Shown one piece after another: positions 8,169 through 44,358 of a DNA stretch of 64,000 nt. Below the pieces are notes generated by a model. That model was given only the letters and a program-made list of their open reading frames with translations, made no database searches and was not told where the DNA came from. Location of the stretch: NCBI GenBank assembly GCA_973895155.1, contig OZ316899.1:3555455-3619454 (forward strand), read 5' to 3'. Positions within the stretch are counted from its first letter, which is position 1. Every line of letters begins with the position of its first letter. A program made the position numbers and the translations under genes. Source of the stretch: Marsupella aquatica (Eukaryota > Plantae > Marchantiophyta).

Positions 8169-8843
8169 TGGGGAATTTACAAACGACAGCAAACAGATAA
8201 CAGTAACAGGAAACAGATTCTGGTACCAGTTAAAAGGAGCTGTTACCAATGAACAGTGTTTGGGTGGTCGTGAACAGTTATCTTAAAAAAAGGTCTCAAA
8301 ATCTCCATTTGAAAGTACAAGAATAGAAAACAAAACCACCAAACCCTCGTGATAAATAAAAGAACAACAAGGAAACAATTTTTTGAAACATAAAAGATGG
8401 CTGCCAATTGAGATACACAAAATCCAAGACAAATACAAGTAGAAAAGAAAGGCCGGAAAAAACATTCGCATATATTATCGCAAAATAGAAAACGCGCTCG
8501 GCTTAAGTGATACAAAATGCAGTTATCAACATCAACAATCTGGCCTAAAAATCCCATCCATGAAGTCACGGTCGACACCGTCGGAGGTTTTCGACTAATA
8601 CATGAATAGCGCTCGGCGCTAGCCAAAAACTAACTAGAAAACTAGTCGTTTCTTGGAGACAAGATGCGTCCAAACCCAGACAACATAGTCAAGATCCATT
8701 CCCTCCCACAAAATCCGTTGTCGTTTCAATAGCGCCCGGCGCTAGCCAAAACCTAAATAGTAGACAACCGGGAAAACTCTAACGCCAGAGCTGAGGTCGA
8801 CTTCAATGCCACAAAATCCGGAAAACTTTAGCAGCGCCCGGCG

Positions 8844-9275
8844 CTAGCTTAAAGCGATCAGCAAAACGAAATTGAAGCCAAGACCACGCAAACGAACGTA
8901 TCCCTCTGAAGGTCCTCGACGAACAGCCCTCGTAAAATGTTCATTAGGAATATTACTGTCCTTAAAATCAACTCGCCCAAACATTTCTTGTACTCTTCGA
9001 TCGATTGGGAGTACCCGATCAACAAGAACTCTCGGGTGAGACGAAAACCGACTAGAGAATGGAGGCGCAGGGGAATCGACAATCCAAGGGATGTTCTTCT
9101 CTCCAGGACTAATAGCCTCATCATACGGGAGAGCATGACGGTTCCGAAAAGTGGAAGTTTCAGTTTCTTCAGTCTCCATCCGCGATTCAAAAGAGCTGAA
9201 ATGGCTCTCTTCCGGACGCACACGAGAAGGATGAAAAGTTGCCTCCCAATCCATTGGCTCATACTGACTCGCCAT
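8844..9275 (-). CDS. Uncharacterised cargo ORF of MULE A (143 aa or first exon)
   Basis: ATG-initiated ORF (MASQYEPMDWE...). No recognisable domain; no counterpart seen in element B. Confidence 0.35.
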   Translation of the reverse strand: MASQYEPMDWEATFHPSRVRPEESHFSSFESRMETEETETSTFRNRHALPYDEAISPGEKNIPWIVDSPAPPFSSRFSSHPRVLVDRVLPIDRRVQEMFGRVDFKDSNIPNEHFTRAVRRGPSEGYVRLRGLGFNFVLLIALS

Positions 9276-9419
9276 GTTTCAAAGATCCCAATCTAATATG
9301 TAACCTCTCCTCCCGTAAGAACGTCGTCCGCGAGTGCTATAACCGACAAAGGTCAAAGAAAGGTCCACGAAGACTAAGACGCCAGATAAACGTCCGCGTA
9401 CACTACCATTCCAAAATGA

Positions 9420-9780
9420 CCATCAAACTATCATCGTCCCGTTCTATTGCCTCCCGAAACTATCTTCGCCTTGGTAACAGGTATCGTCCCGTTCTATCGC
9501 CCTGCTCTAACGTCCCATTATATCGTCTTCCCAAAACAAAGTCTTTCCAAACGAACTATCATCCCGTTCTATCGTCACGTTCTATCGTCCTCCCGAAACA
9601 AAGTCTCCCCTCCCGTTCTATCGTCCCGTTCTATCGTCCTCCCGAAACTATCATCGTCCTCAACTATCGACGTCCCCAACTCTCGTCGTCCCGAACAAAC
9701 CTAAACTGAAACTATAGTCGTCCCTTCCGCCCGGTCCCTAAACTATGGAATCATCGTCCCGAAACTATGGTCCCCAACGG
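9420..9780. repeat. Degenerate tandem array of CTATCGTCC(C/T) / CGTCCCG motifs
   Basis: Many short variants (ctatcatcgtcccgttctat, atcgtcctcccgaaacta) packed in ~360 bp upstream of the 8844-9275 ORF. Confidence 0.8.
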
Positions 9781-10047
9781 CTTTCCGATGACTGACTAAA
9801 GAACACAATCCAAATGGCAGTTGGTATCCAATGACGATGACCGTTGACAGGAAACGACAAAGACTAAACGGCCATTTAGAGATTCCATTTGGCGAGCGCC
9901 AGGCGCTTGTAAAGAACAGAAGTCAAAAGTAATCAACAAGTAGAGAGAAATCAACAATTTCAAAGGACCCTCAGCAGAGGGAAATAATACACTTGTTACA
10001 AGCGCCGGGCGCTGCTAAAAGATTTAGCCTCAACTACCCACTACTTC

Positions 10048-13000
10048 TCACGGTTCCGAAGATTCTGAGTCGGAACCAGAATCTGTACTCTGGGATCTGT
10101 CCGTGGACACAGCCTCATCATCTACGTACTGGCTGCGGGAGAAGTCATCAACATAAGGATGTTTAATGAACTTTCGGTCAACACCCCTTCGTAATCGAAG
10201 ACCTTTGTTTTCCCAACAAAGTGTCCTTGCACTTTCTGCTTTCCTTGCGGCTTTCTCTGCATAGGAGGGAAGAACAAACGGTTTTTCCGGTGTTTCTACG
10301 TTGTGTCTCACGATCTTCCTCCACAGTTTGAATCGTCTCCTTGCATTCCACTCTGACCTGATATAACAAAGTCCATTTTGTAAGGCGCCTTTCCCCAAAA
10401 CAACAAAAGAAATGTTATGAATTGACGGGAATGGAGAAAGAAGCTTACGAGTTTATGAACATTACTCAGAAGAGTCACCACTATCGGTTTCATCTGCAGC
10501 TGCACGACGCTCTCCCTTTTCCTCCTCGGAGTTTCTTGTACCTTGTTCCTCTCCACCTTCACTCGATTCATCATCAGAATCAAAATTGAGAACCGACCGA
10601 AGCTTATCTCTCTTTTTTCTGTCGGCAGTAGGAACAGGTGGAGGTAACACTGCAATCTCTTTGGGAGACAACAAATCCATGAAAACCTTTGAAGCGGTTT
10701 CAATAAATTCTTTCCGGTGTTCTATCCCGAGTACAAATCGTCCAGAGAAGTCGCCAGCAATGTAAGAGCTTCCAGCCCCAGCAGTCCAATCCATAAAAAT
10801 ATCACGAGGCCGTGTGACAAGCTCTATAACAGATTGCATAAAACCCACAGACAGACGAGCATTTCCAGCAAACTCCATTTGCAGGAATGGATCTGATTTG
10901 AGCGAAGAGAGTCCGATCAAATTGGTAACCGAAGGGTCCTCACTGATGGACAGCGGCCAAAATTTGGGGTCTTTGGGAATTTTACATTTCCCATTAATTC
11001 GGCCAAATATGTCGAGCTTGAGGGTAAACATCTCTCGGTCTGTCTTTGCCGCATACATCGGGTCAGACATCACAACATTATGTGAGCATATACACTGAAA
11101 TTTCCTTGACTCCTGACAGGCAGCAATGACTTGCGACATGGGATCGTACTCCCCATTGTGTAGAATTACAAGGAACCCATCATCTGATAAAAATGGATCC
11201 ATGGATTTGAAAAAAGATCTAGCCATTGAGTGATCTGGAATGTTCCATTTAGGAACCTTCTTATCAATGATAGATGGTTTGAACCCGGTCGGTAGGTAAA
11301 TGAAGCCGGCATCCACTCCAAACGATCTTACTTTTCCCCCCCGAACAACTCCCTTCTCTTTAAATCCCAACTTAACGAGGTCTTTTCCCCATTTCTCCAC
11401 ATCACTAACCCACTCGGGCTTCTCCTCCTTGTTGAACGTCGAGTCAAAAAATTCAGAAAGGCTTGTCTCAACCATGCGATGGCGAGACACAGTTGTTTTG
11501 AAGTTTCCAACTTCACGTTGGAAACCAGAAGCTATAACACTCTCCCTTAAAGATTGTCCACCTTCGACAACTCTCTTTCGTTTCTTCCTGGTACTCGTGG
11601 CGTCGATAGGAACTATAACCTTCCCTTTGTCGACTGGAGTAATGGGGTCCGATCGAGCTCCCGTGTTTGCCTCAGAAACTTCAGGTGTAGCATCCTTTTT
11701 CGTATCTCCCGTTCCCACCGTATTAGACTTCCTCCCTCCTAAAATATAACCAGGTCGTAGTTAGAATAAGTACTTTTAAAGTATTGAAAGAAGCTAGCGC
11801 CTGGCGCTAACCAAATGCAATTCACTTAAGTCGCAACCGAAGCCTAATAACCAAGAAAGAGAATACCCTCAACAGAATATTTTTTGCCAGCGCCTGGCGC
11901 TGGCAAAATCATGGATAGCAATACTTACTCTTCTTTCCAGATTTAGTAGACTCACTCGGTGCTGCTAGCTCCGCTTTGGCTTTCGCGCGAGGTTTGCGAC
12001 TCCGGTCCACATGCACAACAGTTGTTTCACAGATAGTTTGCAAGTTTGTGGCAGACTTGTCTACATCGTCAAGTAGACCCTGCTTCATGTCGGACACAAG
12101 TTTTGCTGGCATCTGAGACTTTGAAAGCTTATGGAAGGCATCTTTTTCCCTTTGATCAAAAGGAGAATCCCATCTATCTGTATCTAGATACCAGGGGCAG
12201 TGAGTTCTCTCCCATTCTGTCATTGGTCTCGGAGGAAATATGCCCTCCGTGGGGTACATAGAGTACAAATCAGCCAAGGCATCATCTTCACTTATTGAAA
12301 TCCACTTCATAAAAGCTGCAGGATATGCCCAGAAGTAATCAGGTTTGGTTACCTCCATGTGCATGTAGAACCTATACACAAACCTCTTCGCTCGCTTCTG
12401 GTTTCTCTGGGTGTAATCTTCTTTGTCAGGGTACTTTGAAGGCCACATAGTGTGAAAGAACTTATTCTTCACGGAATCACCAAATCTCTTGAATTCATTT
12501 GTAACAAACTGAACTAGATCATCAAACGAACTACAATTCCACTCTTCCAATCTATTCGCGGGCATGGTTTGCTCAACTTCACGTAGACATGAATGTAACA
12601 TGCCAGCAGCAATTCCCTCCACACTATTCCAAGTGATCCAAGTGTGGCACCATTGTTTGACTGGATCATCGTTAACACTTGCTGGGTGAAAAAACTGTCT
12701 CCGCAGCTCAGAATTGCAATGTGCCACAAGTAAAGTGCTTTGTAACTTTGGGTCTATAGCAGAAACAGCGGTGAACAATCGTGCGCGGTCCATCGTACAT
12801 ACAACGGTGTCAGGCTTCTTCTCTCTCTTGTTTCTCTCTGTGACAGCATACATTTCTGCACATGTACTGAGGAAATCTTCAAATTCAGGACTTAATAAGG
12901 GCGTAATTTTTGAAGACTTCACTGCCCAATCTTTGGTTGCGTCTTTCATCATGGCCGCATGCCGTTTTGAAATCTCGTCCGCCGACCATGGACTCCCTTG

Positions 13001-14155
13001 AGCCTCCGCTGCCTCCATGTTGAGTTTGAATTGATGCGAGTACAACTTTATCTTATTCTCACAAAGAATGTAAACAAGTGCTTCTTGTGGCATCTTCTTC
13101 GTATACCATGACCCCTTCCGAGTTTTCAGCCGAATGCTTTCAAACTTCTTGAAATTACCCGGGTCAATCAGTTTACTGTAATACTCAAGGTCATGCGCCA
13201 GAATTCGTTTGATTCTGTCCGCATCCAGGATCCAGGAAGGCTCTACAACTGCTTGGCCAAGCCTACACGAACAAACGTTGAGAGTAAGAGTCAATGAAAA
13301 ACAATTCATGTATAAGCAGCGCCGAGCGGTAGTAAATACAGCACTCGCAAGATTTAAGGAAAGAACTGGAAATCATGAGAACTTACTGATTCACGGTGTG
13401 CATAGCTGCCTCAATTTCAATGAGAGATCCCTTGTCTCCTTTAAATATTGTACAGAGCACACAAGGATGATATTTTGGATTGTCCGGGTTCTCCTCTGTT
13501 ACAAGCGTCTAGGAGTACAGCCTGTGATTTCCATCGAATACAGAGAACATCTTATCCTTCAAGACGAGAAAATCCGGGTCAGCCTCGCATTCAGCCTCAA
13601 ACTTCTCGTTCTCCAATTGCCATATTGGATCCCATGAATCACGAATGTCCTGGGTACAAGTCAGAACAATTCCGTTCTCATCCGTTGGCTGCACATAGAA
13701 ACGCATCCCTATCGAAGAGTTGTAACCCATACTACGAAAAGAGTCTTTCAGCTTCTCGATGGAAGAGCTGTCTTTCTGCAGAGTACGAACCACCTCCATG
13801 TGAACCAATCGACACAGAGGGATTCGAGGCGGCTCCTTGTCAAATCCACGAGAATCCTTTCCAAAAGACATGACATGTTTTGAAATGAGATTAGTCTCAG
13901 CAAGCGCGCAATCCACAACATCCTGGATCGCAATTGTGTCTACGTTGTCCATCTTTCTTCACAAAGGATTTGGACCCAAAACACCGCTGACAGAAGTGAG
14001 CGGCAACAACTTTGAGGAACGAGTTACACGACGTGTATAGACTGAACCAGTAAACGAAGACTGCGAAGATTCAGAATAAGCTCGCTCCTGGTCAGGAACC
14101 GCACTATACCCTCTGGAAGAAGAGGGGAAATCAATACCTCCATCGTCTTCCTTCT
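10048..14155 (-). pseudogene. Spliced ~1200-aa gene: ParB/Srx-like domain + helical domain + beta-class N4C/N6A methyltransferase-like domain; two nonsense transitions in exon 1
   Basis: Exons ~14155-13387, 13262-11929, 11738-10466, 10357-10048 are joined in frame by GT-AG introns. VFDGNHRL (ParB-like), VDAGFIYLPTG (motif IV position) and DIFMDWTAGAGSS...GRFVLGIE (motif I/II). Stops at 13959-13961 (TGA) and 13509-13511 (TAG; W in element B). Confidence 0.8.
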
Positions 14156-15107
14156 AGAAGCGTACGAACTATCGTACAATGAAATTATGGAACTATAATC
14201 ATCTCTGAACGTGTAATATATTCTAGCGGGAGGATGACATAACCTAGAGGAAAGCCATTAGCTCTGATGTTTGGCGGTTTCCAACGTCTGTATACGGAAG
14301 GTTTAATTACCAAAATCAAATGGTAGAAGATGCGTAACACACACGGAAGTCATAAGTTACCGTTGAATGTTACCGTTAAAGACATTTCCTAACATCATAT
14401 CAATACTAGCGCCGAGCGCTAGCATTAATGATGACCATCAAGGTGAACAATTTAGAGTATGCTTATAATAGCGCCCGACGCTAGTATAAACTGGAAGAAA
14501 TTAAGAGGTCTTTTTTGAAGGAGCTATGACATAAATTTCGGCCTTTCCACCCCCATATTTTATTAAAGTATCCTTCAGTACATCGTTTACGGAGAAATAT
14601 TTCTCAAATGTAATACTAGCGCCCGGCGCTAGTATAAATGTTCATTTATCATCCATAATCCATCAAAACCATCCTTTGAAGGCACCATTTATTCCCAATT
14701 ACCACCTGGTATGTGGTCATAATGTTCATTTTCAGGGAATTTATTCTATACTAGCGCCGGGCGCTAGTTTGGAATGTCGAGATTTCAGACACATTTTTAG
14801 TGGCGTATTTTAGTTAGCGCCAGGCGCTACTAAAATTTGACAATACCTTGTCATATCTTATGGTCTGTTTAAGTAAGGTTGGTGATCTTTTTAGCAATAT
14901 GTTTGTGTCTGACATCCGGACTTCTTGGGGAAAAAATGACAAAAATCATTTATGGTGCCAACGGATCCTCCATCGTCAATGTTTTATGTCGTATACAAAC
15001 GGATCGGTTAACGTCAAATTCCCAGGTTCGACAGATATAAGCTGAACAATACCATGAACTTTTCTTCTTTCAAACGCTATAGCCCTCGGTTTTTGTTTTT
15101 GTTCACC

Positions 15108-18100
15108 ATGTCTCGGTCTATCGTTCTTTCTCAATTCGGTTCTGAAGATATTGTGACTATCCCCGTCCCCATGGAAGATACATACAAGCAGGTCCGGGAG
15201 AGGTATCTCTGCGGGAGATTTGATTTGAAGATGAATGACATTGAGGCCATTGTTCGAGAGCTCGAATCCATTGATGATATCGAGGATGCTGCAACGTTCA
15301 ATGTCGATGACGGTGAACGGTTTTGGCATCTATACGCAGGGATCTCATACTCGGTTCGTTTAAGACAGCATGCAGGACTGTCCAGTTTCCCGCCAGTTCC
15401 ATGTGATGTGGTTGAGATTTCTTCAAGTGAGGATGGAGATCGTACTCTAAGTCCACCGTCGAAGAAGAAAAGCCCGCTCCCTGCTGTCGTGAAAGCTGAG
15501 ACTCCGGGAAGCTCTAAGCAGTTGGAGGTCGTGTACCGGCGCAGTGCGATGGATACGTTACTCAAATCAACTGGTCATAGTGAGTTGTCACGGTTCATAT
15601 CAGCGGGTGATTTCAGGCATGAACAAGTGTCCTGTCTGCCAACTAAGTACAATGGTAACGTCGTGTTTGAGTTGCCGCCCATTGATAAGATGCTCTCTAA
15701 AGGCTCTAGGCTTAGGGACATGGATCGTGCCAAAGATTGTTACATTTGGACACGCATATTTCCAACAACTGCAACTGTTCATCGTAAAAACCTTTGGCAG
15801 TTTGGGAAGGTTACCTGTACGGGATTCATTGAATGCAGGAACAAGTCCTGCGACTATTTCCAAAGGAAGAAGAAGGCAAATGCTAAGGCATGGCAGGGTA
15901 CTCCAAAGCTCAGTGGTCAGTATGCTGTGGGATCTTTCATCGAAGAGGGAGGTGTTGTTTGTCATTACTACGAACAGATTCCTTTTTGTGTGAAGTACTG
16001 CCCTGCCCGTTTGTTTTACATGTACCCCCAAGTATTACTTGATGCGGAAACATGTAGTCATATGTCCCGCCTGGAAATTCATATAGGTGAGCACAACCAT
16101 CCAGGTAGAAAAACCTTATGTAGGAGTGCGGAGAAGATAGCTGAGGATCTAATTAAAAAAAACATGAAGCCAATCCTCTGTCAAAACTGGCAGGGATCTT
16201 GAATTCTGCTACAGGGTCCTTAGTGAAATCTCTCTGCGAACATGTTGACGACATGGTCGATATCGAAGAAACTGAAATATGGAAGTCTCTGATGGTCCTT
16301 TCCACTCCGCAGAAGTTTGCATCTCTTTGTCGGAGCGTTAGGATAGACCAAAAAGGTCGGGGTGAATTAGATTTTCTCTCGCAAATGCAGAGGAGGATTC
16401 ATGTGTCGTTTCTCCAGAGGTATTTGCTTCCAGGTCAGGGATGTCAGAACGATAGGCCTCACATCTTTAAAATGACCGTGAAAGGTCACGGTTCCGGTGT
16501 GGATCTTTTGAGGCAGATGCAACCGGGTGGAAGACTCAAAGGAGCCTGGGTAAGTTTCGATGTGATGCAGCGTGTCACCACGGATTGGTTTACTTTCAGC
16601 GCACACGTCTACGACCACAATTTCCGTGCACTGTGTACAATTTTCACATGCGAGTTGAAAGGTGAAGACACTTAGTCTTTTGAAAAGGCATGGAGAGTGA
16701 TGATTGAGGTTTGCAAAGAAAATGAACTTCAGGAGGTTGTCATCCAAGGATTTATGGCCGACAATGCACAAGCTGGATGGAATGCAGTGCGAAATGTTTT
16801 TTTTGGTGGACACCCGGACCCGGAGAGGGAGCGCTCTGATGCATTTCACTTTTATCAATCTTTTCATCGTCATTCCAAGGAAGGAGTACTGGAAGAATGT
16901 CAATCGGAGCATAAGAGACTTTGGGAGAAACTGAGAAATGCTCCATCATTTGTGGCAGCATACCGGGTGTCCCGAGAGATTGTTGTGTGGTGGCAATCAG
17001 GAAACTGTGTCCCGGAAAGCTGAAGATGCTGCAAAGCTGGATATCTTGGTGGGTTGTTCGATGGCGCCAGTGGGGCAATTTTATTCGAGTGGTAAGGCAT
17101 CCATCTATCTAGACTGTAATGTTCATCAACTTCATATTAGCGCCAGGCGCTGGTTATTTTCTCCATACACGTCAAAACAAGTAGTACAAGAAATTGAAGC
17201 CAATATGTAGTTAGAATTCAGTATTAAACATTGAAATTGTATTTCAGGCCTGTTCTACATATTTATGTTGCCAGCGCCGGGCGCTGGTAATAGAATACTA
17301 CTTACGGTTGACATTTTTGTATGGCAGAGCAAAAGCGCTGAGGAAGGTGCCTTGATCCCCAACTGTATAGGGTCAGAATCAAGACATGCATCCATGAAAG
17401 CCTCGGCTACAAAGAAAAAGGTCGGTCTTTATGAAGCTTGCGAAGTTGACCAAAACCGTGCTCTGTCTCAAGTTGCCGGATACAGTGCATACCGTAAAGG
17501 CTTGAACCGGGGGAAGGGGCCAACTATATGGGAATTGGCGTTCCGTTCCGCCGATCAAGCAGGTTCGCCAAGATTGTTTGAAGAAGCGACTAATATGCTT
17601 CTATCTAACGCAACAGAATTCGATTTGGAAAGAAGTACTCCCCTGAATGGAGATATAATGACGAAGTCAATGAAGAGGAAGGGACATGCAATTGGGACTG
17701 TCTCTCCACAAGATTCCCATCGGCATGACACCGTTCTAATAACCACACCAAATACTCGTGGTTTGAAAAGGAAGAACCTGAACAGAACTGATTTTTCTTC
17801 TATTCCCTCAAGTTCTGATCATCCTGTCACAAAGGCGGTGAATCTCTCAGGTATGGTCACATCAGAGAGTGATACTGATTCACTGGACTATACTCCTCAA
17901 ACAACCCGAACAACAAGATCCTCAAAACCTCCGTTCAGTGCCCCAGTAGCACTTCAGAATAAACTTCCACGCACGATTGTGCTAGAGAAGGATGTCCCTC
18001 CGGGGCAGTGGCAGTTGCGACGGACATCGAAGTATGGAGCAGGTCCGCAATGCAATGGTACACTGAATGGGAGTTCGGATCGCGATGAGTGTCAAAATTG

Positions 18101-18857
18101 TATCAAGAAGGTTGGCTTCCATTCGTCTGAAGGTGTTGTCGGAATTGTCGTGAAGGGCCATCGTCTCTTCAGGGGCGAACCCATCTCCGAAATGATTTGG
18201 TTTTGCCCGAACCAAGCGTGTTACAAGAGTCATCCGCGTTGTGGTGTTCAGAAGCTTCCTCCTTTTCCTGACATTTTGCCTGTTCTGAAGGGTACGAGCC
18301 TGTCTCCTTCTGAAATTACATTCCTGGAAGAGCAAGGACTTGTCTTAGCGCGAACAATAGGATTGAGTCGATCTGCGCCATCTGCTTTTGACCTCAGGAT
18401 AAATGTTAACGTGTTCCCAGAAACAATAAGGTTTTTGGAGCCGAATCTCCGACTTGGTAGTCGGAATGGGAGGAACTCAAGGCCTCGGTCTAATCTCACT
18501 GTGGGTCACACGAAGCGAATGGAGTCTGCACGACAAGAAGTGATGAGTTTGGATGGGGAATGGAATGTTCAGACCGGAAATGCTTTTGGAAAGCAATTTT
18601 GAATTCGAACCCATGAGAACCATCGATCACCAAGCACATACTTCATCCAAATCTGTATCTTCCCCGCTTGCTCTTGTGAAGACTTCTTCCTCCGACATTC
18701 GCGTGGCAAGTCGTACATGCCTTGCAAACATCTATACTGGGTGTACATAAATGTTTTCAAACTTGAGATTGAGGAGTCGACTCTTTGTAGCCAACCTATT
18801 TTGACTTTAGGCGAAGTCAGGCTTGTGCTGGAGAGGCAGAACTTGAATGGCTTATGA
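15108..18857 (+). pseudogene. MULE transposase of element A (WRKY/GCM1-like Zn finger, MULE catalytic domain, long spacer, SWIM finger), disrupted
   Basis: C..C...CPA...HIGEHNHP; WVSFDVMQRV / GFMADNAQAGWNAVRNVF / FHFYQ; intron 17092-17327; PACSCEDF...CKHLYWV at ~18660-18745. Frameshifts and stops near 16200, 17021 and 18600. Confidence 0.88.
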
Positions 18858-19547
18858 GAGAGATTGAAACTGCCCAATAGGTCGTCGTTCAATATAACGG
18901 TTATTCCCTATTTTGTCTTTTTCCAACGGATATTTTAGTTGTTTTATTGAGACTTTGTTGGTTAGCGTCGGGCGCTGGTTCTAGGAAACCGGATATTCAT
19001 TGCTTCATTATGTACGTGCATTGTGGAAGAATGACCTCTTGTTTTATTTAAAATGTGTAAGTTGATTAAATTGTCTACTGTCTTCAAAGCCTCGAGGATG
19101 TGATTTGTCATTTGTTTGTGACGTTACAAGGTCCATTTAATCAACTCCTTTAGATTGGGTTCATTTGGACTCCACGATTGACATGTGCTATGGTGGGTCC
19201 CACTCTAAGGGTCACTATTTGGCGATGAAAATAGATTGATTTGCATGAATGTTTCTTTAGGCACACTCCTAATACCATGTTTTTTATCTTCTACAATAAA
19301 TTGTTGTGTAAATGGAGGATTGATAGTACACTTCATCCATCGGATGGCACAAAATAATTGTTTGTTTTAAACTTTATTGCCCCCCCAAAAATTATGCCAT
19401 TAGAGTGGTGGATATGCACGTTATGGTTTAGGCAAAACTGGTAACAGGGACAAGCTTACTGGTAACAGGTACAATTTCCCTGTTAATAGAAAATAAACCC
19501 CTGGTAACAGGTTTTCTGTTTTCTATTTTCTGTCATGGCTATCATAC

Positions 19548-23920: not shown

Positions 23921-24140
23921 TTAAATAGATAGTTACTTGTTTTTATAGAACTAAGATAGTCATTCTTCAAACATAGTAATTTACGTACTAGCTATTTACT
24001 ATTCTAATAGTTTTAATGTGATACTATCTTCTCATTTTCTAAACTTTTGATCATTATGAATATGAATGTTTGCTTTTTCTACATAATTAAAAATATTTTT
24101 CTATTCATTCCTTTCTTTAAAATGATTATAATAAGAGTTG

Positions 24141-24480: not shown

Positions 24481-24511
24481 AATAATACACTTTTAATGAA
24501 TAGGTTGATAT

Positions 24512-31173: not shown

Positions 31174-31176
31174 AGT

Positions 31177-32712: not shown

Positions 32713-34156
32713 CCCTTGTTAGGTAGCACCACTACCAAACAGAGGTCCAATCTTCCTTAGAATCCTCAAAATTGATGCAAGCGTAAATGCAGGCAGGAAT
32801 GCAGCTCCAATCGCACCTCGGCAACAAGAGTCAAAACTATCATGGATCTCCTCACAATGAGCAAACCTTAGCAGTCACACAGTATTTAGTGGCTACTTTG
32901 AGAAAACATTAAAAAAAGTCAATGCTCGCAGGTGAAGGAGTAGGATAGAAGGCAAATATATCAATTCTTTCCCTAAGCTTGAGCAAGCAATTCGTCGGAA
33001 AAGCAACAGAGACCTACCGCTACATAGGAAATTAGATGTTGTCAAACAGAGCTTGGTCTTCAATTCAAAAGAGACCGGGGATAGACAGGACTACAACTTT
33101 TTGTGAGGGGGGGGGGGGGCACTGACCACAACAGATTCAAGATTAGCACAACTAACCTTGTAGGTTGTTGCAACTCCAATGTCCACCTCCAATTGGCTCA
33201 ATGTTCAATTTGCAGGAAACGAGTTTACTGCACGACATTGCATAGTAAGCGCAGTATACCAAAAGACAAAACTTGGACCATGGCCAGACAATGACATAAA
33301 CAAATCAGTGAACATTATACAGGGACTGTGAATCCCAAGCCAACAAAGCAACAATCCCAACCCTACAAAGATCAACAACATTCCAGCAGCTCAGGTCTGG
33401 TACAAAATGCTGGTATCTTTGTTTTTCATGATTGAAGAGCAAATTCCAGCAAACAAGGACTCGGAAATGAGAGACAGCAAAGTACCTGATAGCAAGGTAC
33501 CCGAGGTAGAACATTTAGGTAGGGGTCAGAAATAGGGACACACTTACACAAGCTCGATGTACATAACTGAATGGTAAATGAGGTTGGGACTAATACTAGG
33601 AGGCTTTTCACGGTGACAGCAAACAGCAAACAGCAAATAGTAAAGCTCATAACAACAAATGTCTGCACCAAAAAAATCTTCCCTAAATCTACATCTCTCG
33701 CAAAATGAAATTGAAACCTCTAAAATCCGTTATTTTGAAACACATCATAATACTAGCGCCCAACGCTAAAGTCTTGAAACAGTCCAGAAAACCTGAAACC
33801 TCATTTGAAACATCTATATGCAAAAGTATGCCCAAAAACAACTGTATACTAGCACCTGACGCTAGTATATAGACCTCAATAACAAACCTAAAAAACAAAG
33901 ATCAATTAAAGACCATCAGATGCCAATTGATGAAAAAATGGGAAGGGGGGCAGTTGCATTCTAATATCACCAAATTATAATACACCCCAAGTTAAGATTC
34001 TCCTCTTCACAAAGGAAAGTATAGTAAAAAACTATGTGGACAGTCCGTCTCACTTTATAAACACCCATCAATATTACATGTGTTCACAATAGCGCCAAGC
34101 GCTATTTAGTAAAATAGCCAATATCTCTATGTAAAAACTACTCTTTTAAAGTTTGG

Positions 34157-37100
34157 CTAGCCATTAGATTCTGAATTAGTCGTATCTAGTTTTGATTCTT
34201 CTTCACTACTTTGTGATCTATCAGTAGACTCAGCTTCGTCGTCTACATACTTTCTCGGGACGATGTCATCAACATAGCGGTTCCTCAAAAACTTCCTATC
34301 CAAGCCCCTTTTGAGCCTTAGGCCTTTGATTTCCCAAGTCAGCATTCTCACAGAATCTGCCTTTCAAGCAGCCTTTTCTGCATAAGAATGCAAGACAAAT
34401 GGCTTCTCCGGGGTTTCTATTGCATTCCTAGCGACTTTCCTCCGTAGTTGAAAGCACTTCCAAAGGTTCCACTCAGACCTGGAAAGTTGAATCCGATATC
34501 TTTAGTCGGATCCGGGAAAATGGTGGAATTTTGTAGACACTAACGTCACCCTTAAAAAGAAAAAAAAGACAGGGAAGCTGAAGATCATTACTCAGAAGAC
34601 TCTTCACTATCCTCAGATTTAGAAGACCCAAGGTTCACCACTTTCTTGGAGGCACCATCATCTTTGGACTGTTGAGTACCATCGCCTCCATCATTGTCCT
34701 CGTCAGAATCAAAATTCAGAACAACACGGAGTCTGTCCTGCTTCTTACTCCCCACCTGCCGGTGCGGAGGTGTGGACGTGGAGGCCTCTTTGTTCTCGAG
34801 AAGTCCAAAGAAAACTTTTGTGGCAGTGTCAAGAAACTCTTTACAATTTTCAATCCCGACTACAAACCTCCCACAATGATCTCCAGCAACAAACGTACTT
34901 CCGGCCCCAACAGTCCAGTCCATGACAATATCCCCAGGGAGGGTAATTAATTCTTAAATTGAGTGCATGAAACCCATAGGCAACCTTGAATTCCCAGCAA
35001 ACGCAAGCTCAGGTAGAGGATCATTTTTTGGCACGGGAAAACCAATGAGATTGGTTATCGAAGGATCCTCTGTATGTGAAAGAGGGCAAAATTTGGGATC
35101 CTTCGGGGCCCTACCTTTGGATGAAACACGCCCAAAAACATTGAGAGTAAGCGTAAAAATCTGCACATCGAATAATGTTTTGTTCAAAATAAACATCAGA
35201 TACTACATCGAGAATACGGAAACCATTCATGAAGAGGATATGCCACACTAGCGCCTGGCGCTAGCGTCACCGTCAATCTCCGAAGGAGGACACAAAACAG
35301 AAACTCTGGAATAGCGCCAGGCGCTATTATACATACCTGCATATCCGAGCGAGGCCTATACATTGGAGTGCCCATCACAACATTGTGTGTCAAGATACAC
35401 TGAAATTTCTGTGAATCTTGACAAGCTGCAATGATTTCAGAGACTTGGTCATAGTCGCCCCTGTGCAAAATCGCTAGCAATCCATCATCTACGAGGAAAG
35501 GATCCATTGTTCTGAAGAAGGCACTTGGAATCGTATAATCTTGAAGGTTCCATTTAGGAACCTTCCTATCCACAAGTGTTGGTTTCAACCCAGTCGGAAG
35601 ATATATGAAACCAGCATCAACTCCAAAAGCTCTTTCCTTTCCCCCTCGGACAACCCCTTTTGCTTGATCCCCAGACTTCACCAGCTCTTTCCCCCAACAT
35701 TCAATATAATTTGAAACCCAGTCCGGCTTTTCTCCCTTGTTAAACAGGGAATCAAGACATTCTGTAACACTTGACTCCACAAAACAATGTCGAGTACACT
35801 TTTGTTTGAAATTCCCCACATCTCTCTGCAATCCAGTAGACACAACCAAATCTCGGGAAGAAGATCCGAGCCTATCATCAAGTGGTCCTCTCTTTTTCTT
35901 CTTCTTCATACCTGTCGCGTCCACTGGAACCACTGCCTTTACACTCTTCCCAGGGGTTCCCGGATCTGGTGTATTTTCTGCACCAATGTTAGCTTCAGAG
36001 GCCTGAGGAGTAGCGTCATCTTTTACATCAGCAGTGGCATCCGACTTCCTTCCCCCTGAAAGACAGAGATACGTTACTCAACGGAACTAGTTCTCATAAT
36101 AGCCCTCGGCGCTAGTATCAATTGGGGAAAAATATGTCATATGAACAAGAGCGGGAATCCCTTACTGAATCCTATGAGGCATACTTACGTTTTTTAAGAG
36201 ATCGAGTTGATTCACTGGGAGCTACAGATTCATTCTTGGCCTCCACTCTTGGCTTTTGGCTCCGATCAACATGCACGACAATTGTCTCGCATTTCTTCTG
36301 CAGCTCAGTTGTTGAAACGTCCACTTCAATCGCTAGACCCTGCTTCATTTCCGAGACATACCTTGCTGGGATTTGCGACTTTTGCAACTTCATGAAAGTG
36401 TCTTTCTCCACCTCGTCAAAAGGTAGATCCCATTTGTCAATGTCTAAATACCACGGGCAATGAAGTCTCTCCCACCCTGACAAGGCGTGGGGTGGAAACT
36501 TTCCCTCAACTGGGTACATCAAATATAGATCAACAAGATGGTCACCATCTTTTATCATCACCCACTTTTGAAATGCGCCTGGGTAAGCCCACAAAACCTC
36601 AGGAGATTGCAACTCCATCCACATGTAGAAACGGTAAACGTATCGTTTGGCTCATTTTCGGTTTCGCTCAGTGTAGTCCTCCTTGTCTGCGTACTTTGAT
36701 GGCCACATTATGTTGAAAAATTTAGCCTTGACAAGGTCTCCAAATGATTCGAATTCTTCAATAATGGACTTCATGAGAAAATCCAGGGACTCACAACCAG
36801 ACTTCACAAGAGGTCTGGTTTAGGGTTTAGGGTTTAGGGTCATCTGGCATGCGATCCAAAACCTGCTCGAGTGAGGTGAGGATCAATCCAGTAGCAATTT
36901 CCTCCACTGAATTCCAGATATGCCAGGTATGGCACCACTATTTTACAGGATTGTCGTTCACACTAGCCAGATGAAAGAACTGTTTCCAAATCTTCGGAGT
37001 ACAATGGGCGACAAGAAGTGTGCACCTTAACTTTGGATCCAGATAAGTCACTGCAGTAAACAAGCGAGCGCGATCCATAGTGCAAACAACTGTATCGGGT

Positions 37101-38392
37101 TTCTTTTCTCTTTTGTTCTTCTCTGTCATGGGAAACATTTCGGCACAGATGGCCAAGTAGTCACCAAAATCAGGGTGCAACAATGGAGTGATCTTTGTTA
37201 CTTTGATAGCCCAATCTTTTGTCGCTTCCTTCATCATAGCTTCATGCCTCTTTTGCATCTCCTCTTTGGACCACAGAGTCCCTTGGGCGGCTGCAAAATC
37301 CAATTCCACTTTGAACTGGTTTGTGTAAGATTTAATCTTGTTCTCACACAAAATGTAGATGAGCGCGTCTTGTGGCATCTTGTGTGTATACCAAGAACCC
37401 TTGCAAGTCTTCTTTCGAATGGCTTCAAACTTTGCATAACTCGTAGCATCAATGAGGGGTTTGTAGTGCTCTAGGTCATGTGATAAAAGACAAGAGATTC
37501 TGTCGGCATCAAGAATCCAAGATGGCTCGACCACAACTTGTCCCAACCTACGTCAAAATTTAAATGGAAACTAGCAGCACCGGGTGCTAGTAAAACACCA
37601 AATATAATATTACATCAAAAATCCATCTTGAACTAGTACATCATATTAAATGAGGTTGTCCTGAACAATGACTTACTGGTTGACAACGTGCATGGCAGCC
37701 TCAAGCTCCATGAGGGAACCTTTATCTCCATTGAAAACAATGCAAGTCACACGAGGGTGGTACTTAATGTTGTCCGGATGCTCTGCTGTCACAATCAACC
37801 ACAAATACAAACGGTGATTTCCATCGAAGACACAAAACATCTTGTCTTTCAAAACTCTGAAATCAGGATCAGCGTCACACTCTTCCTCAAACTTTTCATT
37901 CTCGGCAACCCAGATTGGGTCCCAAGAGGCTCTAATCTCATTAGTGCAAATTTGTGGAACCCCATCCGCATTCGTTGGCTGTACATAAAATGGCATGCCC
38001 ATGCGCAAATTGTATCCAGAAATCCGGAATGACTCATTCAATTTGTCGATGGAGGCGCTCTGCTTCTGCAACGTCCGCACCACTTCCATATGAATCAGTC
38101 AACATAGAGGAATTTGTGGAGGCTCCTTCTCCAATCCTCTGAAATCTTTGCTAAAGGACAAGACATGATTGGATATGTAATCGTCCATTGAAAGTCCAGC
38201 AACACCAAAATCAACCCGTGCAACTTCCTCAGTCGTGTCCATTCTCCCCTTTCTTGATTGCATGGTTGGAAGAGTTGAGCCAATGTCTGAATGTGAATGA
38301 GACGCAGCCGACCGAGTCACGCGACGGGTGTACACAGATTCTGAAAAAGAGGACTGTGAGGACTCGGAATGACCGGCATGACTATCTCCCAT
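34157..38392 (-). pseudogene. ParB/Srx-like + methyltransferase-like gene of element B, decayed
   Basis: Exons ~38392-37677, 37547-36189, 36055-35337, 35160-34592, 34478-34157. VFDGNHRL, GVDAGFIYLPTG and DIVMDWTVGAGST are conserved with A. Several stops and frameshifts. Confidence 0.82.
36817..36840. repeat. Interstitial telomeric repeat GG(TTTAGGG)3T inserted in coding sequence
   Basis: Directly visible; shifts the frame of exon 2 in element B relative to A. Confidence 0.85.
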
Positions 38393-39299
38393 CCTTGTAT
38401 TACCCCACTGAGAGATGGTGATGGTGTTGAGCAGAACGTTGGACAGTTTCGTACAACTCTCCCAAAGCCCCTGAGCCAGTATGAAGTAACAGACTCAAGT
38501 ACAGAATGTCACGTTTGAACAGGTTGCTCCTAGAGAATTACGTATCTCCCACGAATGCCAAGTCCCCACAGAGGGTTAAGAGATGGAGTCTCTAGCACAT
38601 TAGAGTGCTGCTCCACGGTAACACCAACAGAGCCGAACACTTGGAAGATTACCATTGGACCAGCAACCGTCTTATACTTTGGCAGCGTGACCAGCAATCT
38701 TCAATGTTACCGTTAAAATATGACCGTTGATTGATTTGGCCTTATTGATAGCGCCAAGAGCTAGCAAAAACAACTCTATATTACCCGATTTAAACTACTA
38801 ATCGACCATATATGTGTTTTTACACAATTCAAATGGATTTCCAGCCTTGAGGGATGAAATGGACCGTTTTATCCATAAACGTTTATTAGCGCTTGACGCT
38901 ATCATAAATGACATCCGATTTGAAGCTAATCGTCACGCGAACGTAATACAAACTCATCCATATCCAGAAATATTTTCAAAATTCCACTGGTATCAGAAGG
39001 ATAATTTTGAGCATTCCAATGATAACGCCGAGCTCTAATAGGGAACGTGTCACGGGTAAGACCCCTCCATCGGAAACTACAAGCATTTTCAAGACTTGCA
39101 AACGATATTTGGTACAAAGATTGACTCATTCCCATAAGACAAAACATTGAAAAACACGAACTGACTCATGCAAACTTTGTCAAGGGGATGTCTAAGAGTT
39201 CGGAACTCCATTTACGAGCATCAGATTTACTCCACCAAGTCTAGAAACATCAAGTGTACACTTCAGGATTTTTTAAAAAACTGGGGAGTAACCTCCCAC

Positions 39300-39910
39300 T
39301 ACATTCCGAGACTACCATGTTGGCAAAAGATTGACAACCATTACTACCAAAACTGCAACAACTGGTCGTGGCTATCAACATCAGACTCCACCAAATGGAG
39401 TTGGCTATCTACTCAGGACTACTTTGTTCTGTAGGATCACACGACTGTTGCGTAGCCGAGTTAAGTTAATCTTCCCACCACCTTGGCTTGTATGCGTTCG
39501 AATCGTCGTTGGAATTGCTAGAACCAATGCCCCAGCAAAACCCACCCCGACTGCAAGAGGAGTTGTCGTTGGACCCCAAGCCATTGTGGGTCCCTACGTC
39601 GTCGTCTGTATCCTCGGCTTCACTAGAAGAACTTGTGCCATGACCAGGTGACTGGTGCAAAGTAGAAAGCTTTGCCTTTGACAACAAAGATTTCTGCACG
39701 GAGGGTTGAACTTCTGCTTTAGATTGAGGAGCACCATCTAGTGCGGATACAATTGCCCGCTCTTCGCGATCACTTTCCCCTTCGCCAAGATCAGGATTGT
39801 TGAATGAGCTGGAGGCTTTGCGAGAGACTTCTCTGCAACACCCTCTCCATCATTGTCGCTTTGAAATGTAACCTTCGCCTTCCCCCTTTGCTCGTGGTGG
39901 AGCCATGAAA
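39300..39910 (-). pseudogene. Low-complexity basic ORF remnant specific to element B (MAPPRAKG...)
   Basis: ORF pieces 39850-39905, 39738-39938 and 39466-39699; may be upstream exon(s) or separate cargo. Confidence 0.3.
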
Positions 39911-40573
39911 ACTCTAACGAATGACTCTGAAAGATCAAGACTGAAACAAAAGTTTCTCGGATGAAACTGGAGACGGGAGCGCAAGAAAAGTTTTGAGAAT
40001 GAAAAACTCCAAATGATGGGAGGCAGACTTGCCGGCCTGGTTTTGGGGGATAGAGGTGAGAATGTTTGGACCCCGGATGGACGTCTCAGATGTAATGGTT
40101 TCCGATCATGGGATAGATGTCCGAGATGCGTCGGTAGATTTTTGAGATCTCTTGATTGTGAAAACTTTAATGCACACGTGTGTATTTGGACGGCGTCATA
40201 GATTTCCTGTCTGTTGTTAGAGTTATAACGTATGAGCAGTGAAGATAGCGCCAAGCGCTATTATTACAATCGGAGCTTTTCCTCTCCTCCTCACCAGGCG
40301 ATACTGTATTTGGTCTAGAGTCATGCTTCCAATGTTAAGTTGTTCTTCGTTCACAAAAGTAGCGTCTGACGCTATTAAACTACTGACCAATCAGTTGGTT
40401 CAATATAGCCGTTGAATAACGACAACTCAATTGATTTACATCGTCCAAACGCTTAACATATCTTTCTTTGTCATTATTCAATGTTTGTTTATAATGTCGT
40501 TATTAACCTCGTACATCAAACAAGCCTTAAACCGATTGGCAAAGTGAGACATCAATTATTCTCTTCCGCTGAA

Positions 40574-43283
40574 ATGGGACGATCGATCGTAGTTACACGC
40601 AAGGACACGCAGGATGTTATCACGGTTATCGTTTCCCCTGAATCTCAGTCAAGGAGAGTTTTGGATGAATACTTGGGGTTAAGATTTGATGTTTCAAAAG
40701 AGTGTATTCTTTCTATTTCCCTCCTCCCTAAGGATTTGAAGGGAAATACCATCTTCTATGATGTCGTTGATGGACTCAGGTTTTGGACGATGTATCCTGA
40801 TAAAGTATACGAGGTCTTTGTTTTGGAAGATTTTGAAGCATCGGCAGATATATGTCCTATTTCCGGTGGTGTTGATGTTGTCAATCTCTCAGACACTTTG
40901 GAAGACGAGGGGAAAAATTCTCCCCTTTCCTTTGATGTCCCAAAAAGGATCCCAATGGATCCCTTGGTTGTGAAGATGGAGATTTGAGATGTTCCAATTG
41001 TATATCGGCAAAGTGCAATGGATACTATCCTAAAATCAAAGGGGCATAGCAAGTTATCTCGTTTCATTAGGGAGAACAATTTCATGCATCAGACAGTTCC
41101 CAACCTCCCGATGACATACAATGGGAATGTAGTGTTTGAGTTGCCTCTAGTCCAGTCGATTGCATGAATTTGAAAGGGGAACGACTGAAGGACACGGACC
41201 GCGGGAAGGATTGCTATTTGCGCGTCCAATAACATGTGGAACTCGAACATACATTACTCTGATATAATTCTATGCATGACGTCAAAACTCACCCATGACC
41301 CCTCTAATGAACCACCAGGCTGCATTTTCTGGAGAAGATCGATCCCAGATCCTTCGCCTTTCACAGTCATCTTGAAGATGTGAGCACTTTCGTCTTGACA
41401 TCCTTGGCCTGGAAGAAAATACCTATGAAGAAAGGGAAGTCTCACACACTTTTGCATCCGCACCAAATATTTGAGCTCACCTTAGTTTACCTTTTTGGTC
41501 CGTTACCAATGTTTTGTAATAGCTCCCGACGCTAATATGGAAAATGAGTACTCGGAGTCCAATGTCTTGTTACAGTATAGTAGCGCCAAGCGCTAGTGTG
41601 AACAAGGAGACTTTTGCAACTACAAACATGACATTGATGCAAGAGATTTAATAGCGCCAGGGGCTACTAATAGTTAGAGTCCATATAGCATAAATACAAA
41701 CTACACTTGTCGTGAATTACTGTAGTTGCTAAATATATTTATTCGTTTCCTATGACAGAGCAAGAGTGCTGAAGAGGCAGGTATGATTCCAAATTGTACT
41801 GGTTTGGAATTGGTCCATGCAGGCATGAAGGCGTGGCAAATGAAGAAGCGGGTTGGCCTCATGGAGGGATGCAAAACTGACCAAAACCGAGCTGTATGTC
41901 AGATTGTAGCTTATACTGCATGTGGTCAAGGATTACATTGGGGAACTGGACCCACTATCTTTGAGCTGGCTTTCAGATCTGCGAACATGACAGGGTCTCC
42001 ACGTCTATTTGAAGAAGCGACCAATCTCCTTCTTTCCAACGCAGCTGAATTTGATTTGGAAAGAACTGTTCCATTGAATGGAGACGTCATCACTCGATCG
42101 GTGAAAGGAAAAGGTAATGCAAGTGGGAATGTCTCGGCACAAGACTCTCACAAGCATGATACTATCCTTCTGACTTCACCAAATACAAGGGGTTTGAAGA
42201 GGAGAAACCTCCATTTTACAGACTCCGAGAAGATGTCTTCCATACCTTCTGCTGGTGGAAGTGGCGTCGTTAATTTGTCTCAAACTGAGAGTGAAGATTC
42301 TGAGGAGGTCGTCATCCTTGAGACACCCTCATGTCGAACGACAAGATCTTTTATTCCTCCCGTCAGACATCAAGCTGAGGCCGCGCCTGAGGAATCTCTT
42401 CTCCCGATGGAAACTGACATAGCTCTAGGTCTATGGCAGCTCCGACGAACTGCAAAACATGGTCTTGGTCCAGCTTGTAATGGGACGCTCGGTTGGAGAG
42501 GAAGCCGCGATGAATGTCAAAATCGAGTAAAGAAGGTTTTCCAAATCCAGAAGGAGTTATCACAATAAATTTGTAAGAGGATGTAGACTTTTTAGAGGAG
42601 AACCTCATCCGGACCAGATATGGTTTTGCCCAAACAACAAATGTCACAAAAGTTGGCCAAGAAGAGGTGTTTCAAACATTCCCAATATACCACCCGTTCT
42701 CCCCATTGCAAGAGGGACCAATCTCTAGGAGGGCAAGATCCAATTCTTGAGAAAACAAGGTCTAATTGGGACAGGAGAGGTAAGGAAAGGTCAGGAGCCA
42801 GCCCCGTTTGAGTTACGCATCGATGTGAATTTGTTCCAAGAGATGATCAATTGAGCGGACCCAATTTTCAGATGTGGCTCTAGGAATGGAAGGAAGTGCT
42901 CGCAAAGAGTATGCGTGAATCTAACTCAAACACATTACAAGAAGATTGAAGCATCCGAAATAGAAGTAATGAGACTCGTATGAGAGAGAGATGTCACGAG
43001 TGGGAATGCGTGGGGAAAGCAGTATTGTATCAGAACACATGAACATGAGAGGACTGTTGCCTCTTATTGGGTGCAGATTTGTTGTTTCCCTTGCTGTTCA
43101 TGTGAGGATTTCTATCGGAGGCACATTTATAGGAAACCTTACATGCCTTGCAAACATCTATATTGGGTATTCAGGACTGTGTTGAAGTTGAGTCTTCATG
43201 ATTTGACACTATCTAGTCAACCAGTTCTGATATTGGGCGAAGTCCGTTACCTTCTTGATCGACAAAATGGAACAAACATGTAG
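40574..43283 (+). pseudogene. MULE transposase of element B with internal deletions and an inverted segment
   Basis: MGRSIVV and YRQSAMDTILKS...YNGNVVFELP match A. ~41225-41510 encodes FLHRYFLPGQGCQ...WVSFDVMHR on the minus strand. The exon from 41759 (SKSAEE...) and the SWIM motif CSCEDF...CKHLYWV are conserved. Confidence 0.88.
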
Positions 43284-44358
43284 TCAATTTAGTGACATTC
43301 AACTGCTTTAATTGGCATTTGTCTTTTCTAATGGGCAGAAGATGTACCCGTTTCTTATTCAAAAATATGTAGTGTCTGTTGCTAGCCAAAATTCGCAATA
43401 GATAGCAAACATATTGACTGTTAAATAAAGCGCGTTTTCTTATAATGACCTCTATATTGCCTGTTATTTATCATTGAATGGTGGGCCCCATTATGTTAGC
43501 ATTTCAGTGAGCGCTTATATGGTTGTTGTTTTTTAACATGGAGCCTTTTTTGTCAACTTTGAATAACCTAGAAAACTCGTACAAGTTCTTGTATGAGTAA
43601 TTGAATTCCTCGTATGAGTAAATTTTTGCTCATACGAGCAGAAAATTTGCTCGTAACAGCAAATCTATTTACTATTTGTTGTCACGGTGGTTATACCCAA
43701 TACTAGGCGCATTGGAAAGGGAGAACTTCAATTTACGATTGTAAGGGGCAACATCTAGCAAAGGGGAAGCAAAAGTGCTAAACTTGCACCATGGCAAAGG
43801 GGACATGAAGCACAAAATCAAAGCATGACCGACAGGGGGAAGAAGCACAGTAGGTGGACAGAGAATGCACAACTATCCAAGATACCTCAGAGACAAAGCG
43901 TATTGCAATGCAAATGTAATGGTAGCAGGTAAAGGCAGTGGTGTTGCAGCAACTCCCTTCGTAGCTCTAGCCAAAGGCGCAGAGCAAAACTCTCGTTCAC
44001 GTTGCAGCTCCAACTTGCAGGACGGTTAGCATTGCCCAAGTGCGCGCAGCTTGAGCTACCTTTCACCTGGTTCTTCCCTATAGATGACAACCCGCGGCCA
44101 AAGCTAGTCCCAAACGCAAATGCCTCCCTATTCACAGTGCACAGCTTTGAATCAGTCCCACCGTCCTCACCGATTAGTCCCACCTTGCAAATGGCTTGCG
44201 GATGGAATGCAGAGACTAAGCGCAAGAGACCGGGCCACACTCCATCCACACTGCAAAGATGGGAAGCAACACACACAACCTTCAAGAAACATAGGCGTAG
44301 CGGTCCTCAACTCCTTCACCCTAAAATGCAGCAGTGACCTCGTAGCGACCTCATAGAT

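Follow-up and report, generated by a model that had tools for sequence, protein, structure and literature searches.

Two transposon copies and their genes

The window analysed here is a 64,000-nucleotide stretch of the liverwort Marsupella aquatica (GenBank assembly GCA_973895155.1, contig OZ316899.1, positions 3,555,455 to 3,619,454). It holds two diverged copies, elements A and B, of a DNA transposon family that pairs a transposase gene with an oppositely transcribed accessory (cargo) gene and with many copies of one short palindrome. An earlier note on this DNA had read the two copies as Mutator-like elements (MULEs) whose cargo joins a ParB domain to a methyltransferase (MTase), and had proposed from this a self-marking or anti-silencing system. 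Element A (8169..19547; 11,379 bp) is full-length but defective and was inserted into that part of a Ty3/Gypsy element which resembles a long terminal repeat. Its limits were given exactly in the earlier note (8169-19547), as the 9-bp target site duplication (TSD) CCGTCTCTC adjoins it on the left (8160..8168) and on the right (19548..19556). Comparison of the window with itself located both flanks of A contiguously in a paralogous Gypsy copy (7421-8168 matching 45957-46695 and 19548-21648 matching 46687-48798). The two matches overlap there by exactly 9 bp, which is the target present as a single 9-mer in the empty site at 46687..46695. This arrangement proves A to be an insertion independently of its TSDs. 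Element B (33601..43687; 10,087 bp) is older and decayed, represents a diverged subfamily and is flanked by AATACTAGG at 33592..33600 and 43688..43696. The insertion and its 9-bp TSD had been recognized correctly, but the limits then given for B, 33599-43696, take in part of the TSDs. The terminal inverted repeats (TIRs) of both copies are weak, as had been noted, and a 19-nt block, GACAGCAAACAG-N-AAACAG, is common to all four ends at 13-16 nt from the tip. In A this subterminal block lies on the plus strand at 8185..8203 (GACAGCAAACAGATAACAG) and on the minus strand at 19516..19534 (reverse complement GACAGAAAATAGAAAACAG).

The cargo gene of A occupies 10048..14120 on the minus strand and is spliced, with exon limits that are approximate; its domain order was obtained from a three-frame reading. 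The exon at 14120-13381 encodes a Ser-rich N-terminus and a ParB/sulfiredoxin (Srx)-like domain with the string FDGNHR, the exon at 13289-11918 an all-alpha middle domain of about 440 amino acids with no Pfam match, the exon at 11736-10462 a beta-class MTase-like domain, and the exon at 10398-10048 a short conserved C-terminus. Introns of the form GTAAGT...YAG are kept in both A and B, including one between the middle and C-terminal parts, so the spliced structure and the divergent orientation described earlier were borne out. The transposase gene of A (15054..18854, plus strand) encodes a Cys/His-rich N-terminal domain, a DDE-like core and a C-terminal SWIM-like CxCxnCxH string, and is interrupted by an intron at about 17080-17300. 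In B, the cargo remnant (34178..38413, minus strand) is collinear with that of A at 57-67% amino acid identity and contains frameshifts, while the transposase remnant (40574..43268, plus strand) lacks the catalytic core that corresponds to A 15746-17297, except for an inverted fragment at 41233-41502. The cargo gene of B is also interrupted, within the MTase-like domain, by an additional intron, which carries the palindromes at 35250 and 35313. The position of this intron, after ...D(I/M)Q, is common to B (35197-35330), the homologous locus L001 (3560-3790) and the C-terminus of the Logan protein P0001. The intron bears palindromes in B and L001 and is missing from A (11040-11100), which implies either intron loss in A or gain elsewhere.

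Both A and B are pseudogenes. The cargo gene of A has in-frame stops at 13959-13961 and 13509-13511, and its transposase gene, compared with an intact open reading frame (ORF) from Riccia, has a frameshift near 16160 and stops at 16673-16675 and 18600-18602. The coding DNA of the two copies is 65-72% identical and their non-coding DNA is not alignable. In all eight segments tested, the proportion of synonymous differences (pS) was 0.69-0.94, which is saturated, and that of nonsynonymous differences (pN) 0.20-0.32. The combination of saturated pS and low pN indicates that the lineages of A and B have long been separate and that both genes were mostly under purifying selection meanwhile. The earlier statement that two strongly diverged copies keep all three components holds for the divergence and the design but not for the intactness of the parts, as B has lost its transposase core.

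Assignment of the transposase to the MULE superfamily is provisional. Searches of Pfam and NCBIfam with the window pieces, with the intact 511-residue Riccia ORF and with homologues of 690-874 residues returned no MULE, Transposase_mut, IS256 or FAR1 match at E-values of up to 1-10, and a sequence search of the PDB found nothing meaningful. Matches to Fer4 were spurious and caused by Cys clusters. Pfam SWIM matched only weakly (E=0.11-0.59), with the CxCxnCxH string present, and three Riccia homologues are named 'SWIM-type domain-containing' in UniRef. The signature of the MULE DDE triad is a [C/D]xxH motif together with ES-x-(N/H)-xx-K around the glutamate. By eye, and without formal profile comparison, the strings FDV..., GFMAD..., DAFH and SESRHASMK can be picked out of the transposase. 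MULEs have TSDs of 9-11 bp, and A, B and the Riccia element L003 each have one of 9 bp; TIRs are present in weak form, as the 19-nt block of A and B and as a 22-nt identical block in L003. The TSDs, TIRs and motif strings thus fit the MULE label of the earlier note, for which the profile searches gave no support.

Palindromes in Marsupella and in other liverworts

The palindrome AGCGCC-N-GGCGCT is confined to the two elements. With at most one mismatch it occurs 21 times in the window (15 in A and 6 in B) and nowhere else in it, where 0.05 matches are expected, and with at most two mismatches there are 16 copies in A and 14 in B, in agreement with the 14-16 copies counted previously. None of the 16 copies in A falls in coding sequence, although coding sequence makes up 64% of the element (chance about 7e-8). 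Three copies lie in the left subterminal region (8608..8845; starts at 8608, 8731 and 8833, spaced by 102-123 bp), two 3' of the cargo gene (9895..10013; 9895 and 10001), two in the cargo intron that separates the middle exon from the MTase-like one (11796..11901; 11796 and 11889) and a degenerate one, with two mismatches, in the intron that leads from the ParB-like to the middle exon (13318..13330). Five stand in the divergent intergenic region, which is the bidirectional promoter region (14408..14828; 14408, 14470, 14618, 14753 and 14816), two in the transposase intron (17139..17285; 17139 and 17273) and one 3' of the transposase gene (18964..18976). The fourteen copies of B (33755..41665), six with at most one mismatch and eight with two, take up the same kinds of non-coding slot, and their decay consists almost only of C>T and G>A transitions at CG and CNG positions. 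The identity of this 13-mer in A and B, although their non-coding DNA cannot be aligned, indicates that the palindrome was maintained by selection. Some copies extend to 25-27 nt (e.g. 11882-11908 and 14747-14771). The flanks have a symmetric consensus and show little hairpin-type covariation, which reached positions 7 and 11 only when complementarity was compared with shuffles (p=0.03 and 0.006); this combination favours a dimeric reader. As a separate feature of A, eight copies of a TATCGTCCCGTTC-like direct repeat with a 13-bp period occupy 9432-9640, in the interval that separates the left subterminal palindromes from the cargo gene's end.

Word-based protein searches that started from ORFs of the window gave no more than 1-2 relatives. 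With a profile built on the middle domain, 144 cluster representatives were retrieved; source names were present on 16 of the 20 that were looked up, and all were Riccia sorocarpa or Calypogeia fissa. The transposase profile found liverwort and unnamed environmental proteins only. For layout and palindromes, 10-kb flanks of the homologue loci were fetched. The three-part design proposed for A and B proved to be conserved, as it recurs in both species, with the head-to-head transposase and cargo genes of A found again in L003 and L004 of Riccia and L011 of Calypogeia. Element L003 is bounded by the 9-bp TSD CCTTGATCC, has the terminal block GTAACATATCAGCCATCAGCAA and retains the intact 511-residue transposase ORF, and a full-length annotated cargo model (P0150) is also available from Riccia, so these sequenced liverworts provide candidate full-length copies. 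The Calypogeia locus L007 was considered as a member of the family without cargo and rejected, since it is 5'-truncated and carries its own palindrome.

Each of these lineages has a palindrome of its own. Element L003 contains CGGCGGA-N-TCCGCCG in 18 copies with at most one mismatch (0.00 expected), L011 contains TAGCGA-NN-TCGCTA in 23 copies (0.03 expected) and L005 contains CTAACGA-NN-TCGTTAG in 20 copies within 7.2 kb (0.00 expected). The loci L001 and L006 share CTAACGG-NN-CCGTTAG, and L007 and L008 share TCTCGGAGAG-N-CTCTCCGAGA. In L004, CAGCGG-NNN-CCGCTG occurs in both subterminal regions and CGGCGA-NNN-TCGCCG only in the divergent intergenic region. A full-length element carries 15-30 copies of a short CpG-containing palindrome, often arrayed at intervals of about 95-135 bp; the intergenic copies of the relatives are arranged in tandem and recur about every 95-106 bp. 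In the L003 and L011 loci (21-24 kb), all copies with at most one mismatch are inside the element and none in the flanks (palindromes at 1544-15098 of L003, whose element spans 1102-16028, and at 2984-14902 of L011). The slots are those of A, namely the subterminal and intergenic regions, the introns of both genes and the 3' ends, and the transposase intron bears palindromes also in B, L007, L008 and L011. Within a lineage the palindrome is uniform and between lineages it differs, giving at least seven private palindromes. The architecture is conserved, the palindromes are private, and both are under selection.

By per-domain identity, cargo proteins are closest between elements that share a palindrome (59-68% for L001 and L006, 56-65% for A and B). 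Tables of these identities were tried as a means of finding the domain that tracks palindrome type and were set aside, as they cannot split co-evolution from ancestry. Three further observations concern the motifs themselves. Among the 19 exact copies in L005 (32-5810), the central dinucleotide is CG in 7, TG in 8 and CA in 4 (12/19 decayed), while the CpGs of the arms are intact in all, from which the arms appear to be constrained or protected. The pattern would be expected if only the centre were free to decay by deamination of 5-methylcytosine (5mC), and is a hint to that effect. At its centre the L003 palindrome reads GANTC. This is the site of the methyltransferase CcrM, the protein that the MTase-like domain matches best in structure; GANTC does not occur in the palindromes of the other lineages. 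A scan of metagenomes for pairs of A-type palindromes at a distance of 80-110 bp yielded 66 contigs, all of 50-78% G+C and with neither cargo nor transposase, and these were discarded as unrelated bacterial matches.

The accessory protein and candidate readers of the palindromes

In full-length members the accessory protein has about 1,200-1,300 amino acids. An AlphaFold model of Riccia P0150 residues 150-745 (pLDDT 90.5, pTM 0.74) was compared with the PDB by Foldseek. The best matches of the N-terminal domain were ParB-CDP, Noc, Pnob8 ParB-N, PadC and sulfiredoxin, with weak scores (E 0.1-2; template modelling score, normalized to the target, 0.3-0.58). The top ten matches comprise five distinct entries, of which four are of the ParB/Noc type and the fifth, with two matches, is sulfiredoxin; PadC stands at rank 15. 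Profile searches and PDB sequence searches with this region found no Pfam (ParBc) or PDB match. The motif F-x-x-[FLW]-DGNH[RQ] is present in all ten copies in which the motif search found it, nine with DGNHR and L003 with DGNHQ. The structural matches to ParB, Noc and sulfiredoxin, together with this near-invariant string, weakly support an N-terminal domain of the ParB/Srx type. The middle domain of about 400 residues is family-specific and confidently modelled as all-alpha, and a structure search with the P0150 model gave no convincing PDB match for it.

Sequence and profile searches of the PDB matched the MTase-like domain to DpnA/M1.HpyAVI and CcrM, and Foldseek to CcrM, M.BceJIV, M1.HpyAVI and MboIIA. 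It has the beta-class fold with permuted motif order, the catalytic half preceding the S-adenosylmethionine (AdoMet) half, and keeps the AdoMet loop D-x3-G-x-G-(S/T)(S/T) (MDWTAGAGSS in A, IDFAGGWGAT in Riccia and LDCNIGVGNT in L001). The catalytic loop (D/N/S)PP(Y/F/W) is another matter. Its position was fixed by profile alignment to CcrM and by the model strand 958-964 of P0150, which is followed by LPTG, and in all nine aligned members (A, B, P0001, three Riccia proteins, L001, L005 and L006) the loop after strand beta4 is replaced by [L/M/F]-P-[T/S/N/H]-[G/N]. In amino-methyltransferases, the residues lost here supply the polar contact to the target amino group and the stacking aromatic. 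Because of this loss, methyl transfer by the cargo protein is unlikely and must be called doubtful, and a role of the domain in AdoMet binding or DNA reading is more probable. The earlier description of a ParB and MTase-like cargo is thereby upheld for the fold and the AdoMet loop, weakly for the ParB part, and not for the catalytic loop.

The explanation that we favour, and to which we give about an even chance, is that the palindromes are putative sites of a dimeric reader encoded by the element, likeliest the accessory protein, that would mark self copies against silencing and/or aid transposition. A sequence-specific reader of this kind is suggested because within a lineage the sequence of the palindromes, not just their symmetry, is uniform and because flank covariation is weak. 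The accessory protein would be the likelier reader since the termini, the presumed substrate of the transposase, carry a different and non-palindromic motif. Dense binding would then mark the 'self' copies and keep the promoter and the body of the element accessible. Anti-silencing, as reported for the VANC protein of the Arabidopsis transposon VANDAL21 (Hosaka et al. 2017; PMC5735166), would be the most likely purpose, and help in assembling the transposition complex an alternative or added role.

Several points weigh against this explanation. The argument for anti-silencing is one of analogy only. The Cys/His-rich N-domain of the transposase and the target-recognition region of the MTase-like domain are equally possible readers. 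The assignment of the cargo N-domain is weak, and a ParB/Srx domain is in any case not in itself a reader of palindromes, which weakens the earlier reading. With 8-10 loci, covariation of protein and palindrome is inseparable from shared ancestry. One element, L004, has two palindrome types (in the stretches 2631-4255, 8510-9355 and 14354-15148), and in L009 a cargo-like gene is accompanied by degenerate repeats only. Finally, both copies in the window are dead, so nothing in it is currently functional.

A fuller version of the favoured explanation is offered tentatively, as we hold it to be possible but on balance doubtful. A clamp-like ParB/Srx domain, a new all-alpha DNA-reading domain and a dead MTase would together form a dimer that loads on lineage-private CpG palindromes and shields them from host silencing of the 5mC or H3K27 type. 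Reader and sites would co-evolve fast, so that each subfamily would rescue its own copies only, and the system would be an independent land-plant counterpart of VANC built from prokaryotic parts.

If the palindromes were instead binding sites of the transposase, acting as subterminal sites and internal enhancers of synapsis or transposition after the model of the TNPA and Ac subterminal motifs, the accessory protein would have an unrelated function. The clusters of palindromes in both subterminal regions of every element agree with this, as does the conserved N-terminal domain of the transposase, whose Cys/His-rich make-up is typical of DNA-binding modules, and palindromes surround the transposase gene in L007 and L008, on whose available sequence no cargo gene was detected. 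However, L007 is 5'-truncated and L008 a short contig, so the missing cargo is uninformative there. Moreover, the terminal blocks (GACAGCAAACAG-N-AAACAG in A and B, GTAACATATCAGCCATCAGCAA in L003) are separate, non-palindromic and a more natural transposase site, while many palindromes occur well within the element, in its promoter and in the introns of the two genes, and would be superfluous there for the recognition of ends. We regard transposase binding as unlikely to account for the palindromes.

The literal proposal of the earlier note, in which the accessory protein would be a working DNA methyltransferase for N4 of cytosine or N6 of adenine, targeted to the palindromes and marking them as 'self', fares somewhat worse and seems to us improbable. 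It draws on the beta-class amino-MTase fold with its permuted order and conserved AdoMet loop, and on the CpG present in all palindromes and the CcrM site at the centre of that of L003. An active N4-methylcytosine (4mC) enzyme with a TSPPY motif is known from the liverwort Marchantia (bioRxiv 10.1101/2021.02.12.428880), and for the algal accessory proteins the same has been proposed (PMC12477816). Against this, the altered loop, without the amino-contacting polar residue and the stacking aromatic, is found in every member examined, and the Pfam score for PF01555 (21.8 bits; 18.2 for Riccia P0101) is below the gathering cut-off of 26.7. Self-marking by methylation is accordingly the least likely part of the original idea. 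Nucleic acid structures (RNA hairpins in introns and untranslated regions, or DNA cruciforms) or host-factor sites are very improbable: the palindromes are perfect inverted repeats, some of 25-27 nt and many in transcribed introns, but within a lineage all copies share sequence beyond self-complementarity, copies also lie in intergenic and subterminal DNA on either side of both genes, the sequence differs between close elements of one host genome (L003 and L004), which is unfit for a conserved host factor, and hairpins were rejected as the main explanation because flank complementarity exceeded shuffles only marginally, at the two positions named above.

Surrounding DNA and comparison with known systems

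The remainder of the window is rich in other repeats. The Ty3/Gypsy host of A is present in two copies on the minus strand that are about 96-98% identical (1-6215 against 48644-54876, and 7421-8168 with 19548-21648 against 45957-48798), with ORFs for gag/zinc-knuckle (3159-5999) and for reverse transcriptase, RNaseH and integrase (123-3131). A CACTA/EnSpm-type transposase lies on the minus strand at 24302-26633 (Transposase_21, E=5.6e-66, and DUF4218). The 1.6-kb segment adjoining it (22906-24509) is repeated in inverted orientation, at 97.8% identity, at 45959-44357 beside the second Gypsy copy. Further ORFs on the minus strand encode an NSD-type PHD finger (28945-29643; E=1.9e-8) and the integrase core of another retroelement (56697-57440). 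No Rfam family matched the whole 64-kb window. The Gypsy copies and A have an observed-to-expected CpG ratio of about 0.9 and B one of 0.67, against only 0.33-0.38 for the CACTA region and for 56000-64000, which suggests that neighbouring repeats differ strongly in age or methylation history.

Among known systems, the VANDAL21 system of Arabidopsis is the closest in pattern. Like the liverwort family, it is Mutator-type with poor TIRs, carries an accessory protein beside the transposase and gathers short motifs in its own non-coding DNA, often in tandem, with motif and protein differing between related families. The two differ in that the VANDAL21 motif is short and asymmetric whereas the liverwort motif is a CpG-containing palindrome, and in that the liverwort protein is a fusion of ParB/Srx-like, all-alpha and MTase-like parts; the likeness drawn here is one of motif pattern. 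The comparison with VANC drawn earlier was well founded in this sense, as the liverwort elements match the reported pattern of VANC and its target motifs (PMC5735166), each lineage having its own palindrome in the same slots.

As combinations of protein domains, the nearest parallels come from algae and bacteria. According to two reports from 2025, the Ectocarpus transposon Sola1-1_Ec32 encodes an accessory protein with ParB-like and N4/N6 DNA-methyltransferase domains (PMC12477816), and Plavaka and Chondrus Mutator elements of red algae carry PAG2 and PAG3 (bioRxiv 10.1101/2025.02.11.637652). The two prokaryote-type domains that the liverwort cargo resembles are likewise carried there by a giant DNA transposon, in an orientation opposite to that of the transposase, and inverted-repeat arrays lie beside the ParB gene in red algae. 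The authors propose binding and modification of the transposon by its own protein. The algal elements described there belong to other superfamilies (Sola1 and EnSpm/Plavaka) and to other host kingdoms, and their likeness to the liverwort protein is by description only. In the red algae, ParB is fused to a 2-oxoglutarate oxygenase and the MTase to SET, in separate genes, and the accessible text of the algal papers reports neither loss of the catalytic loop nor lineage-by-lineage turnover of palindromes. In bacteria, ParB-parS partition and Noc systems and the ParB-MTase fusions of phages and plasmids share with the liverwort system a ParB/Srx N-domain with GxxR (putative as a fold in the liverworts), multi-copy palindromic sites and the fusion or linkage of ParB with beta-class amino-MTases (PMC4738411, PMC5512222). 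Unlike bacterial ParB, the liverwort cargo is a eukaryotic, intron-containing transposon gene that has lost the catalytic MTase loop, and in it CTPase boxes I/III and a parS-reading helix-turn-helix would be conjectural. Basidiomycete KDZ/Plavaka transposons with TET/JBP genes (Iyer et al. 2014, as cited in PMC12477816 and the Bostrychia preprint) likewise carry an accessory gene of the DNA-modification type; they differ in enzyme class and transposase superfamily, and these citing sources report no dedicated dispersed target motif for them.

The system had been called undescribed. That description suits the liverwort family, but not the idea, as a self-binding ParB and methylase protein was proposed for algal transposons in 2025. 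Our literature searches on these subjects found no report of the liverwort family, of the conserved middle domain, of the loss of the catalytic loop or of lineage-wise palindrome turnover in fixed non-coding slots.

To our knowledge, very few transposons encode a factor that recognizes their own DNA, and VANC alone has been characterized by experiment. The ParB and methylase accessory genes of algae have so far been a hypothesis, to which the liverwort family adds the missing comparative evidence: one architecture across two sampled liverwort lineages, Riccia and Calypogeia, with at least seven private palindromes in the same slots and both genes under purifying selection. The loss of the catalytic loop shifts the mechanism to be expected from the writing of a mark to binding or shielding. 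Liverworts with good genetics make the idea directly testable, and pairs of reader and site could serve as orthogonal DNA-targeting modules.

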